A stretch of DNA of 64,000 bases from Octopus sinensis (GCF_006345805.1 NC_043018.1:28582001-28646000), one strand, 5' to 3'; positions 3,879 through 43,207 are shown, counted from the stretch's first letter. Translations and numbers: made by a program. The notes: generated from the sequence alone by a model not told the origin.

Positions 3879-3979
3879 TTATTTCTTGTAATAAATTCCA
3901 TCTCGTATTTCCAATAATTTCTGCATTGCCATACTGCGATGATTCTCTCTGTCACATCTATCGGTTGTAAAACAGGAGG
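3879..3979 (-). CDS. CT/OP: Terminal coding exon (exon 3) of the same precursor: neurophysin C-terminus plus short extension
   Basis: Acceptor TTTTCTATTTGCTTTGCAG|CC completes the phase-1 Ser codon (T|CC). It reads (S)SCFTTDRCDRENHRSMAMQKLLEIRDGIYYKK*, stop TAA at 3881-3879. It adds the last 2 Cys for 14 in total and matches my recollection of the Octopus precursor C-terminus. It is too short for the ORF track. Confidence 0.95.
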
Positions 3980-4087
3980 CTGCAAAGCAAATAGAAAATT
4001 TATAATAATATAAATACAAATTGATTACGATGTTCAGTAAAGTTTAGAAGACGCAATACCTGAAATTCTCAAGATTATTATAAGATC

Positions 4088-4528
4088 AGGAGTGGCTGTG
4101 TGGTAAGTAGCTTGCTAACCAACCACATGGTTCCGGGTTCAGTCCCACTGCGTGGCATCTTGGGCAAGTGTCTTCTGCTATAGCCCCGGGCCGACCAATG
4201 CCTTGTGAGTGGATTTGGTAGACGGAAACTGAAAGAAGCCCGTCGTATATATGTATATATATAAATATATATATATATATATATATATATATATATATGT
4301 GTGTGTGTGTGTGTGTGTGTGTGTGTGTGTTTGTGTCCCCTAACATTGCTTGACAACCGATGCTGGTGTGTTTACGGTCCCCGTCACTTAGCGGTTCGGC
4401 AAAAGAGACCGATAGAATAAGTACTGGGCTTACAAAGAATAAGTCCGGGGTCGATTTGCTCGACTAAAGGCGGTGCTCCAGCATGGCCGCAGTCAAATGA
4501 CTAAAACAAGTAAAATAGTAAAAGAGTA
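4088..4528 (+). mobile_element. tRNA-derived SINE, family A (internal TA/TG microsatellite, CR1-like tail)
   Basis: A-box-like TGGCTGTGTGGT, B-box-like GGTTCAGTCCC, conserved body, tail GGCGGTGCTCCAGCATGGCCGCAGTCAAATGACT..GTAAAAGAG; at least 9 near-complete copies in the window. Confidence 0.9.
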
Positions 4529-4576
4529 TATATATACATATATGTTGTGTGTGTGTGTTCGTGTGTTCGTGTGTGC

Positions 4577-4970
4577 ATAGATAGATAGATATGTAGATAG
4601 ATAGATAGATAGATAGATAGATAAATAGATAGATAGATATAGATAGATAGATAAATAGATAGATAGATAGAAGATAGATAAATAATAGATAGATAGATAA
4701 GATAGATAGATAGATAGATAGATATGTAGATCGATAGATGATGATAAATCATATAGATAGATAGATAGATAATAGATAGATAAGATAGATAGATGGTAGG
4801 TATAATAGATAGATATATAGATAGATAGATAGATAGATAGATATGTAGATAGATAGTAAATAGATTGATAGATAGATAGATAAATAGATAGATAATAGAT
4901 AGATAGATAGATAGATAGATAATAGATAGATAGATAGATAGATAGATAGATAGGTAGGTAGGTAGGTAGT
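4577..4970. repeat. (AGAT)n tetranucleotide array (others at about 16884-16960 and 29476-29560)
   Basis: Directly visible. Confidence 0.95.
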
Positions 4971-39050: not shown

Positions 39051-39430
39051 GGAGACGGCGAACTGGCACAATCTTTAGTACGCTTAGCGGTATTTCGTCC
39101 GTCGCCACGTTCTGAGTTCAAATTCCGCCGAGGTCAACTTTGCCTTTCATCCTTTCGGGGTCGATTAAATAAGTACCAGTTACGCACTGGGATCGATGTA
39201 ATCGACCTAATCCGTTTGTCTGTCCTTGTTTGTCCTCTCTGTGTTTAGCCACTTGTGGGTAGTAAAGAAATAGGTATTTCGTCCGTCGCTACGTTCTGAG
39301 TTCAAATTCCGCCGAGGTCGACTTTGCCTGTCATCCCTTTCGGGGTCAATAAAATAAGTACCAGTTTAACACTGGATGGTCGATGTAATCGACTCACCCC
39401 TCCCCCAAAATGGTTGCCCTTATGGCAAAA
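39051..39430 (+). mobile_element. SINE family B, tandem units
   Basis: Same body as 12724-13250, repeated twice. Confidence 0.85.
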
Positions 39431-41844
39431 TCTGAGAACATCATTTTTTTTTCATTGTTTTTGCAACCTTATCTTTGGATGGTGACAGATACGAGAATGA
39501 AGTACAAATTAATCCTATTAATATTCTTTCTAATGTGGATAGAAGATTAGACACTTTAATCCAATACATCAACTGTAGTGTTCGACCAGTACTTATTTTA
39601 TCGAACTTAAAAAAGATGAAAGGCAAGGTCAACCTCGGAGGGATTTGAACTCAGAACTCAAATTTTGTATTACATTTGGTAATAATGCTACCAGCGCACC
39701 GAATTTATATCAATAAAAGGTGATTTCCTTCGTTGTTCCTGTTATACGCACTGTTGTTTATATCTTTGTTATCTCATGCATGTGTATGTGCGTGACTGTA
39801 TGTATGTATACACATGCAGAAAGATATATATATATATATATATGTGCGTGTGTGTGTGTATGTGTGTGTGTGTGTGTGTGTGTATGTGTGTGTGTGTGTG
39901 TTAGTGGTTGAGCAAAAGAGTCCGATAAAATAAGCACCAGTTTTACAATGAATAAGTCCTGGGATCGATTTGCTCGACTAAAGGCGGTGCTCCAGCATGG
40001 CCACAGTCAAATGACTGAAACAAGTAAAATAGTAAAAGAGTGTGTTTCTGTGTTTCTGTGTTTCTGTGTGTGTGTGTGTGTGTGTGTGTGTGCGTGTGTG
40101 TGTGTGTATACGGAGAGAGAGAGAGAGAGAGAGAGAGAGAGAGAAGAGAGAATGACAGATGGATAGATTGCTAGATAAACCGACCGATAAACAGACAGGT
40201 AGATTAATAGATATACACACACAGACTCACACTCACGTGCACACAAGCATACGCACTTATTCTAGTTTCTTAATGAAAGCTGATTAGAACATTCAGTAAT
40301 GGAGATTGGATTTCGTTGAACTCATTTCTCGTCTCTATTTGCGACTCGAGTTTCAGTCACTTCGAACTTCAGACAAAATGACTTCTCGATTGAACCTCGT
40401 TTTGACGGGAATATTTCGTCACACACATACACACACATACACACACACACACAGATATAAACACACATAAACACAGAGACACATTTATTGTGCACGTGTG
40501 TCTTGTTCGTACGTGTGTGCGAGCCCGAATGTGGGCGTGTTGTGCTAACACAAAGTAAATATCAAGAACAAAAAATATAAAAAATGTGAGCCAGAATATT
40601 AGAGGAATTGAGCAACGTTGGAATGTGTGTTAAACTCTTTTATTTATCTATACTTGATTCAATTCAATCCAGGTCAATGCCTTTTACCACGTATCTTGTT
40701 CTTTGAATTCTACAATGAAAGTAAACAACCGCACCGTTCCCATGAGATATAGTTGCTGTTCTATATGGTATTCTCAAAGGAACTGGATTATTTATTAACT
40801 TAGGTAAGGCACAAGGCGGACAAAGTGCTAAGCAGCGTTTCGTCCGTTTTTTTCCTTCTGAGTTTAAATTCTACCAAGGTCGTCTTTGCTTTTCATCCAT
40901 CTGAGGTTGATAAAATAAGTACCAGTTGTGCAGTGGGATTGATCTAATCGATTATCACCCATCCCAAAATTGCGGGCCTTCTGCCAAAATTTTAAACCAA
41001 TATCAAGTATGACAGCGAGCTGGCACAATGGTTACCGCGCCGGATAATATGCTTTGTGGCATTTTGTCCGTCTTTACCTTCTGATTCGAAATTCCACCGA
41101 GGTCTACCTTGCCTTTGACCCCTTAGGGGTCTATAAAATAATTTGAGCACTGAAGTCAATGTAATCGGCTTGCCTGCTACCCCTTGTGCCAAAATTTGAA
41201 ACCAATATTAATACTAACTAGTAGTCATTTTATGGTTGCTATTTACTTACGTTAATATAATCCCGGGGAGCATGGAGTCTAGGGTTACAGTCCAATAAGT
41301 GCTATGTGATTTTATAAATTACATGATACTTCCTTTCATTTCCTCATGTAACAGTCCGCTTTAGTTTTGTCTCTATAACTTTCATGAATTACCTAACAAT
41401 GTTGTTTTAATGGTGGAGTTGTGACGTTAAAAATTATCACGTCTATTGCAATTAAAGGTGTTTTCTTTTTTAATGCTACTTAACTTGTTGCAATCCATAT
41501 TAAACGAAGCTTATTTATACCATAATGAGGCTGAAAATATGTATTGCTCTCTTGTGGGTTTATTGGGTGTCATTTTGATAACCGATGGAGTAGAGGACAC
41601 AATGTCTTCTGGCATTTTGTATCTTCCCTCTAATTGAAGCTGCATGGACTAGTGGTTAGGGTTCCGCACTCGCGTTTCGCAGATCATGGTTTTGGATCCA
41701 GGATCGGGCGGTGCGTGGTGTCCATCAGCAAAACACTTCGCTTCAGATTACTTCGGCTCACTCAACTGAAAATGAATTCCAGCAATGTTTGGGAATTGAC
41801 CCAACAACGGACCGGCGCTCGCTTTAGGAGCGAGTTTCTTTTTT

Positions 41845-42235
41845 CTTTTCTTTTACTTGTTTCAGTCATTTGACTACGGCCATGCTGGAGCACCGCCTTT
41901 AATCGAGCAACTCGACCCCGGGACTTATTCTTTTGTAAGCCCAGTACTTATTCTATCGGTCTCTTTTGCCGAACCGCTAGATAACGGGGACATAAACACA
42001 CCAGCATCGGTTGTCAAGCAATGCTAGGAGGACAAACACAGACACAAACACACACACGCATATATATATATATATATATATACATATATACGACGGGCTT
42101 CTTTCAGTTTCCGTCTACCAAATCCACTCACAAGGCTTTGGTCGGCCCGAGGCTATAGTAGAAGACACTTGCCCAAGGTGCCACGCAGTGGGACTGAACC
42201 CGGAACCATGTGGTTGTTAAACAAGCTACCTACCA
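41845..42235 (-). mobile_element. SINE family A
   Basis: Reverse-complement homology, young copy. Confidence 0.9.
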
Positions 42236-43005
42236 CTAGGCCTATCGAAAACGAATTATCACAGATCTCTCGATGTTTCCGAATTCATGTGGTCTTCAGA
42301 GTTATTTGGCGTTGTGAAATGGAAGTGGTGACATTCTAGAGGAAGCAAAATAGTTTCAATCTGGAATTGAAAATAATGAGTAGAACAACGCAGAATAACG
42401 TAAACCGACCAGCGCCGGTTGTCGAGCGATGTGGGAGCCAAACACAAACGCACAAAGATTTATACACACATACCTACATTATATAATTATATACATAAAT
42501 TATGAATGCATACATATCTACACATATGTATGTGCCAAATGTATATTATACAGTGGGCACAACAATATTCTCAGACTGTTGTAAAATGGTATAATATCCG
42601 CACACACACAGTGGAGAAGGGCAGGCCCCAAATATTACATATAGAACATATAATACATATATATCTGTGTGGATATATTTGTAAATATATATATATATAT
42701 ACATATATATATATAAACATAATAATTTTGCTATAATGAAGAAAGTTGCTTCTTAATTACTATAGGTATGGAGCATTTAATAAAAGAAAGCAATTATTAA
42801 ATTCAACACCACCTGGAAAGTTCTTATAAATTCCAATTTTAATAGGTCTTTTTTATAAAATGTGATTTTTAAAGTCCTTTTACGATTTTACGTCAGGATT
42901 CACGATTCAATGACCAGGCTGATTTTTATGCACTGCCATATAGTTAACTTCCGCAGATAAAACAAATAAACCGAAGAAAGAATGATTATATGATTGTATA
43001 CTTAC

Positions 43006-43207
43006 ATTCATCGCAGCAAACACCGTCGGCAACACATCGTCCTTGTCCGTCAGTTCCACACGGCACCCCTTTCACAGAACATGCTGTCGTGCTCTCGTTT
43101 TCCTCATTGCATTCCTTTGCGAGTGTGCCTATGATGCAACCGTCTTTGTGGCAGCATATGTTGGATCCAACACACTGGCCTTCACCATTTGGTCCGCAAG
43201 ACATACA
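43006..43207 (-). CDS. CT/OP: Neurophysin core exon (exon 2) of the cephalotocin/octopressin (vasopressin/oxytocin-family) precursor
   Basis: Translates to CMSCGPNGEGQCVGSNICCHKDGCIIGTLAKECNEENESTTACSVKGVPCGTDGQGRCVADGVCCDE (67 codons + 1 nt, 12 Cys in neurophysin spacing). The acceptor is a pyrimidine tract ending TTACTAG|TGT (phase 0) and the donor is GAAT|GTAAGT (phase 1), the intron positions known from vertebrate OXT/AVP genes. Confidence 0.97.

Follow-up and report, generated by a model that had tools for sequence, protein, structure and literature searches.

The subject of this study is a stretch of 64,000 nucleotides (nt) of the Octopus sinensis genome (assembly GCA_006345805.1, chromosome CM016880.1, about 28,582,001-28,646,000), hereafter the window, which holds the 3' two-thirds of a gene of the vasopressin/oxytocin (VP/OT) family. 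With a probability that we put at about 0.85, this is a single, very long gene (about 95-125 kb) that yields both hormones of the octopus, cephalotocin and octopressin, through the use of alternative first and last exons. Positions are given in window coordinates unless stated otherwise; the coding exons lie on the minus strand. The DNA of the locus was examined in two independent assemblies, that of O. sinensis and that of O. vulgaris (chromosome OX597835.1, a 115-kb locus without N, here called L001, which is colinear with the window and 92-98% identical to it), and O. bimaculoides and Argonauta hians were considered through their annotation.

According to the scheme that we propose, there would be two alternative first coding exons (E1), both upstream of the window: that of cephalotocin would encode a signal peptide, the nonapeptide CYFRNCPIG and the sequence GKR, and that of octopressin a signal peptide, CFWTSCPIG and GKR. 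Either one would be joined, across a phase-0 intron, to a shared exon 2 carrying the neurophysin core. Exon 2 would then be joined, across a phase-1 intron, to one of two terminal exons, E3a (14 kb downstream) or E3b (39 kb downstream), both of which have a stop codon and poly(A) signals of their own. The output would be up to four precursors, of 153, 152, 146 and 145 amino acids (aa).

Exon 2 and its two terminal partners

Splice sites and homology place exon 2 (202 nt, i.e. 67 codons plus 1 nt) at 43207..43006 on the minus strand. The initial annotation of this stretch had proposed a middle exon of 202 bp, and this length was found to be exact; human AVP exon 2 also measures 202 bp. The acceptor side of the exon reads TTAATTACTAG, the donor side GTAAGT, and the segment encoded, CMSCGP...GVCCDE, is the central part of neurophysin. 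The first base of exon 2 opens a codon and its last base is the first of another, so that intron 1 is of phase 0 and intron 2 of phase 1, a succession that has been described as the conserved pattern of VP/OT-type genes (PMC10532012). All splice sites are canonical (AG/GT) and are the same in O. sinensis and O. vulgaris. Exon coordinates, sites and phases bear out the initial proposal that introns interrupt the coding sequence (CDS) where they do in the OXT/AVP genes, and in the ancestral phases. Only one copy of the neurophysin exon 2 was detected by tblastn, in the 64-kb window as well as in the 115-kb O. vulgaris locus, and the two copies are identical (202/202 nt).

One terminal coding exon, E3b (101 nt including TAA), lies at 3979..3879 on the minus strand and corresponds to exon 3 of the initial annotation. 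It is preceded by the acceptor TTTGCTTTGCAG, its product is (S)SCFTTDRCDRENHRSMAMQKLLEIRDGIYYKK followed by the stop, and it differs from its O. vulgaris counterpart at a single position (100/101 nt identical). Exon 2 and E3b are separated by 39,026 nt free of N. Once spliced, they give 100 aa that are identical (100/100) to residues 53-152 of the cephalotocin precursor Q76DN0 (P0001), a match that is not due to chance. The product also matches the Pfam family Hormone_5 (PF00184, neurophysin; E = 4.3e-19, profile positions 3-79 of 79) and contains 14 Cys, as does the product of exon 2 and E3a.

The other terminal coding exon, E3a (104 nt including TAA; 28983..28880, minus strand), lies inside the supposed intron 2. 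It was identified by tblastn, the C-terminal segment of an O. vulgaris octopressin precursor (P0002, CAI9739012) mapping there, and by a transcript contig, L002, described below. The exon-2 segment of that precursor (67 aa) is exactly the same as that of cephalotocin. The acceptor of E3a is TTTTCCTAG and its product is (S)ACSSNARCNTSGGRSKTLKDLLLILNKMYRDKN followed by the stop; at the nucleotide level it is 100% identical in O. sinensis and O. vulgaris. Downstream comes a 3' untranslated region (UTR) of at least 156 nt (28724..28879, minus strand), delimited by the colinear alignment of L002 which extends to 28724, with AATAAA/ATTAAA poly(A) signals 78, 88 and 109 nt past the stop. Since E3a has a 3' UTR of its own equipped with such signals, it qualifies as a terminal rather than a cassette exon. 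Besides P0002, the products that carry it are P0010 of O. sinensis (XP_029649633) and P0011 and P0012 of O. bimaculoides (isoforms X1 and X3).

The presence of E3a changes how the 39-kb stretch is to be read. From its splice sites, the intron between exon 2 and E3a (28984..43005, minus strand) is a GT...AG intron of 14,022 nt, rich in repeats. The 24,900 nt between the E3a stop and E3b (3980..28879, minus strand) comprise the E3a 3' UTR and then sequence that is spliced out when exon 2 is joined to E3b. The intron 2 of 39,026 bp that had been proposed initially is therefore correct as a distance but not as a plain intron, E3a being inside it and the intron 2 of the E3a isoforms measuring 14,022 nt.

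E3a and E3b are about 30% identical and are built alike: both encode C-x6-C and then, after an Arg, a Leu-rich tail of 18-19 aa. The C-terminal peptides that follow the last Cys pair and the Arg are SKTLKDLLLILNKMYRDKN for E3a and SMAMQKLLEIRDGIYYKK for E3b, and E3a contains an N-T-S glycosylation sequon. By position these tails are copeptin-like, and one may speculate that they have a copeptin-like role.

First exons, transcripts and precursors

The hormone-encoding side of the gene was found in O. vulgaris. The octopressin exon 1 (signal peptide, CFWTSCPIG and GKR, with the donor cag/GTAAGT) occupies positions 10001-10135 of L001 and is followed there by exon 2 (68044-68245), E3a (from 81467) and E3b (105009-105109). 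Intron 1, from octopressin exon 1 to exon 2, is 57,908 nt long; E3a and E3b come 13,221 and 36,763 nt after exon 2. Exon 2, E3a and E3b are colinear on one strand in the window and in L001 (tblastn), and the annotated O. vulgaris gene has the octopressin ATG and the E3b stop as its limits. That the introns are huge, as initially stated, holds for the 39,026 nt that separate exon 2 and E3b and for the O. vulgaris intron 1 alike. Neither a second exon 2 nor a cephalotocin exon 1 was found in the gap-free 115 kb of L001, and six-frame searches for further C-x4-C-P-x-G exons gave nothing in the window or L001 beyond the octopressin exon 1 of the latter. In the 64-kb window, six-frame and tblastn searches detected no hormone-encoding exon 1 for either hormone.

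The junctions are seen in a transcript. L002, a 961-nt Logan contig from run SRR16213284 which encodes P0002, consists of octopressin exon 1, exon 2 and E3a with its 3' UTR; the joins fall exactly at window positions 43207, 43006 and 28983. Its 5' UTR (341 nt) can be followed colinearly on the genome ahead of the octopressin ATG, as would fit a separate start of transcription at this exon. Two side observations concern the origin of this contig. Its exon 2 is identical to those of O. sinensis and O. vulgaris to the same extent (199/202 nt, 98.5%), and its first part (positions 1-476, against 9654-10135 of L001) includes a 5' UTR that is only 91% identical to that of O. vulgaris, an AT-rich repeat in it showing indels. 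Given these values, the run may derive from an Octopus lineage that is closely related to the two species but distinct from both.

These data bear directly on the plainest account of the locus, a three-exon cephalotocin gene with an ordinary 39-kb second intron, octopressin being the product of a separate gene elsewhere. It is true that exon 2 and E3b give cephalotocin exactly and that two genes are what published work refers to (PMC7181382, PMC9144402, PMC10172372). However, E3a lies within the 'intron' and is spliced to exon 2 in L002, and the octopressin exon 1 is found in O. vulgaris 57.9 kb upstream of the same exon 2, with no second exon 2 in 115 kb. Moreover, the published octopressin precursor itself carries E3b, and O. 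bimaculoides has one gene with four isoforms. We consider this account very improbable.

The deposited precursors are made of the same exons. The published octopressin precursor, Q76DN1 (P0007, 145 aa), is made of octopressin exon 1, exon 2 and E3b. Its last 100 aa are identical to those of cephalotocin Q76DN0; the differences are confined to the first 45 or 52 aa, respectively, since both proteins carry exon 2 plus E3b and differ only in exon 1. The succession of a signal peptide, a nonapeptide of the form C-x4-C-P-x-G and GKR is present in both P0001 and P0002, and on DNA it was found as the octopressin exon 1 of L001.

When the protein collection was searched with the cephalotocin exon-1 peptide, the sole return was 'cephalotocin-del' (Q76DM9, P0027, 86 aa). 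Its last 34 residues are those obtained when the window is translated from base 3979 in a shifted frame (33/34 identical). Cephalotocin-del is an exon-skipping product in which cephalotocin exon 1 is joined to the first base of E3b with omission of exactly the 202 nt of exon 2. As such it confirms the E3b acceptor, shows that the 202 nt act as a discrete exon, and ties the cephalotocin exon 1 to the present locus. The one mismatch, at about position 3900, is V for E in the shifted frame and a synonymous change, CGA to CGT, in the normal frame; this single-base difference is probably a polymorphism.

Annotations of other octopods extend the picture. The O. bimaculoides RefSeq annotation has one gene, with a CDS range of 110.6 kb and four isoforms, X1-X4, of 153, 152, 146 and 145 aa; these are all the combinations of either first exon (cephalotocin, 52 aa, or octopressin, 45 aa) with exon 2 (67 aa) and either last exon (E3a, 34 aa, or E3b, 33 aa). 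The cephalotocin-type gene of A. hians spans 126.6 kb. Cephalotocin exon 1 is seen joined to exon 2 or to E3b of the locus in the cDNA (complementary DNA)-derived P0001 and P0027, and isoforms X1 and X2 of O. bimaculoides also carry it. In the annotations of four octopod genomes the split gene is the only one given. The single gene with alternative first and last exons is already implicit in public genome annotation. The O. sinensis RefSeq models are an oddity: XP_029649633 (100 aa) and XP_029649634 (99 aa) begin at a Met inside exon 2 (window position 43204; 10001-49326 of L003, the O. sinensis locus, which matches window 53204..1 at 100%). They are truncated, consisting of a neurophysin without signal peptide or hormone.

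A shared exon 2 could also be mimicked by two tandem paralogues, with second exons kept identical by gene conversion and collapsed into one by the assemblers. Near-identical second exons are known in vertebrates (PMC2315648), and the window has one gap, of 100 N. But this gap is in intron 1 and not between exons, L001 is free of N over 115 kb, and the same nested order, octopressin E1-E2-E3a-E3b, is present in O. sinensis, as far as the window goes, and in O. vulgaris, instead of the succession E1-E2-E3-E1'-E2'-E3'. If there were two paralogues, each hormone exon would have its own set of neurophysin exons; what was found is that the octopressin exon 1 and both terminal exons flank one exon 2. 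In addition, the published cDNAs share E3b besides exon 2, and the annotations of O. bimaculoides and A. hians each show one very long gene. Collapsed paralogues are, in our judgement, highly improbable.

The single gene with alternative first and last exons is thus the reading that we retain, and some points weigh against it. The cephalotocin exon 1 is absent from the DNA examined (the window and L001) and is known from proteins; what links it to the locus is the gene model of O. bimaculoides, the range of the A. hians gene and the proteins derived from cDNA. As for the RefSeq isoforms, they are predicted, and in the material examined no independent transcript shows cephalotocin exon 1 combined with E3a. 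Lastly, there may be intronless retrocopies elsewhere in the octopus genome.

As for the position of the missing exon, its absence from the gap-free interval between octopressin exon 1 and exon 2 suggests that it lies upstream of octopressin exon 1 in cis. It would be more than 10 kb upstream in O. vulgaris; a value of about 15 kb is suggested by how far the O. bimaculoides range exceeds that of O. vulgaris. A first exon has no acceptor site, and transcripts starting at cephalotocin exon 1 would therefore splice past the octopressin exon. Each first exon probably has its own promoter, which would account for octopressin being widely expressed while cephalotocin expression is restricted (reviewed in PMC7181382). 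The two hormones would have arisen by exon rather than whole-gene duplication. A more detailed version of this history, to which we give an even chance, is that coleoids, unlike vertebrates with their duplicated gene, underwent two separate exon duplications inside one gene, of the first exon with its hormone and of the last exon, the result being a shared neurophysin core, two tails and up to four precursors.

Earlier reports and related systems

The initial annotation had referred to an early report of uninterrupted octopus hormone genes. This is the paper by Kanda et al. (2003, BBRC 309:743), entitled 'Single exon structures...', which reportedly found the octopressin and cephalotocin genes, two in number, to be without introns. 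The material of 2003 was probably the East Asian 'O. vulgaris', now classed as O. sinensis, the species of the window. Odekunle and Elphick (2020) repeat the single-exon claim and infer a clade-specific gene duplication paralleling that of vertebrates (PMC7181382); papers from 2022-2023 likewise mention two genes, two precursors or a duplication (PMC9144402, PMC10172372, PMC10067623). At the locus studied here the CDS is not uninterrupted, the introns being of 14-58 kb in O. sinensis and O. vulgaris. The single-exon report, as the initial annotation had suspected, is contradicted by the locus, in three assemblies and in transcripts, and does not describe it. The label 'the neurophysin gene' under which the locus was initially described was itself too narrow: the locus serves both hormones, cephalotocin and octopressin, exon 2 being common to the two and E3b as well in the cDNAs that have been published.

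The entries for the genes of Kanda et al. (BAC84977 and BAC84978) are the same proteins as those of the cDNAs and as the spliced products of the locus, whereas the locus differs from the genes then described in that its CDS is divided into three pieces, which extend over some 95 kb or more, and in that exons are shared. As the initial annotation had suggested, the 'single-exon genes' of 2003 would then be cDNA-derived products or retrocopies. In its strong form, the latter possibility is that intronless retrogenes also exist in the genome, were amplified by Kanda et al. and may even be the main expressed genes, the split locus being their parent. This would reconcile the 2003 report with the assemblies. 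Yet no called gene with the exact cephalotocin or octopressin product was found on any contig other than the spliced locus (a weak argument, as it covers called genes only), the annotations of the four octopods give the split gene alone, and both the cephalotocin-del cDNA and L002 show that the split locus is transcribed and processed. Retrogenes of this kind are unlikely; even if present, retrocopies would leave the structure of the transcribed, spliced locus unchanged.

Neither a shared-exon structure nor alternative splicing was found in the openly accessible papers examined on octopressin, cephalotocin or sepiatocin. Judged by title and abstract, none of the papers in the open library that name one of the three peptides is on gene structure.

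The octopus gene shares much with the VP/OT genes of vertebrates and other bilaterians. Like AVP, OXT, the Lymnaea and Aplysia conopressin genes and those of asterotocin and holotocin, it has three coding exons with phases 0 and 1, and its product has 14 Cys and a Hormone_5 domain. The layout is also shared, exon 1 carrying the hormone, GKR and the N-terminus of neurophysin, exon 2 (roughly 202 nt) the core, and exon 3 the C-terminus. It departs from these genes, which encode one hormone each, in having two first and two terminal exons on one exon 2. The introns of vertebrate VP/OT genes are shorter than 2 kb, unlike the 14-58 kb of the octopus. The contrast in size with vertebrates that the initial annotation drew is not so striking for a mollusc: in Aplysia, intron 1 of the conopressin gene measures 40 kb (PMC10067623).

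There is a parallel in coding content with the vertebrate gene pairs. The bovine VP and OT genes share 197 identical bp of their second exon, and the coelacanth genes are 98% identical there (PMC2315648). Like the bovine, human and coelacanth pairs, the octopus associates related nonapeptides with an identical or near-identical neurophysin core, exons 1 and 3 being different. But vertebrates have exon 2 in two physical copies, whose likeness is maintained by gene conversion or by selection, whereas in the octopus one physical exon serves both hormones. In their organization, UGT1A and the clustered protocadherins (variable first exons) and CALCA (alternative last exons, for calcitonin and CGRP, the calcitonin gene-related peptide) are the systems that come to mind. 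As in UGT1A and the protocadherins, alternative 5' exons carry the specificity and are spliced to common downstream exons; as in CALCA, there is a choice of 3' terminal exons with separate poly(A) sites. The octopus gene differs from all three by having only two first and two last exons and by the absence of homology, and a promoter for each of its first exons is only presumed.

Among cephalopods, Henry et al. (2013) are said to have found identical neurophysin domains in the sepiatocin and pro-sepiatocin precursors of Sepia which, if true, would extend this architecture to cuttlefish. A 2016 paper, going by its title, reportedly deals with a VP/OT-type system of molluscs that has several precursor isoforms.

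If our reading is true, no other gene of the VP/OT family has, as far as we could find, been reported to encode two different nonapeptides. The reading would correct two statements that reviews still make, one that octopus genes lack introns and the other that gene duplication in cephalopods runs parallel to that in vertebrates (PMC7181382; PMC10172372), and three exons with introns of phase 0 and phase 1 would again be the rule throughout the family. There would be practical consequences as well. Probes, quantitative PCR (polymerase chain reaction) primers and antibodies directed at neurophysin could not separate cephalotocin from octopressin; single-cell RNA sequencing based on 3' tags would group cells by E3a or E3b and not by hormone, and counts at gene level would pool both hormones. 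A knock-out of exon 2 would abolish both. The O. sinensis RefSeq models, which are without hormone exon, need repair.

Content of the introns

The window contains the 3' part of intron 1 (43208..64000, minus strand; at least 20,793 nt, with no hormone exon), and thus only the acceptor side of this intron. The 100 N at 56927-57026, within intron 1, are the only assembly gap of the window. No open reading frame (ORF) with a Pfam match, no tRNA (transfer RNA) and no Rfam family was found in the introns. A nested gene or RNA gene was considered and rejected: the long ORFs are low-complexity read-through of microsatellites, with no Pfam, tRNA or Rfam matches.

The introns are repetitive. About half (45%) of the intron between exon 2 and E3a has another copy in the window, and 28% of the window is repeated within it. 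They also contain an element of about 185 bp resembling a short interspersed nuclear element (SINE), with the sequence GCCGCTACGTTCTGAGTTCAAATTCCGC..., of which there are 12 copies or fragments on both strands, with 74-95% identity. It was recognized neither by ARAGORN nor by Rfam. Copies lie, on one strand or the other, at 12766-13214 (2.4 tandem copies), 13469-13538, 23721-26252, 30299-30470 and 39107-39657. Microsatellites of the types (TA)n, (ATAG)n and (TAT)n are dense throughout the introns, for instance at 3480-3741, 4577-4983, 8882-9123, 34724-35054 and 55359-55588.

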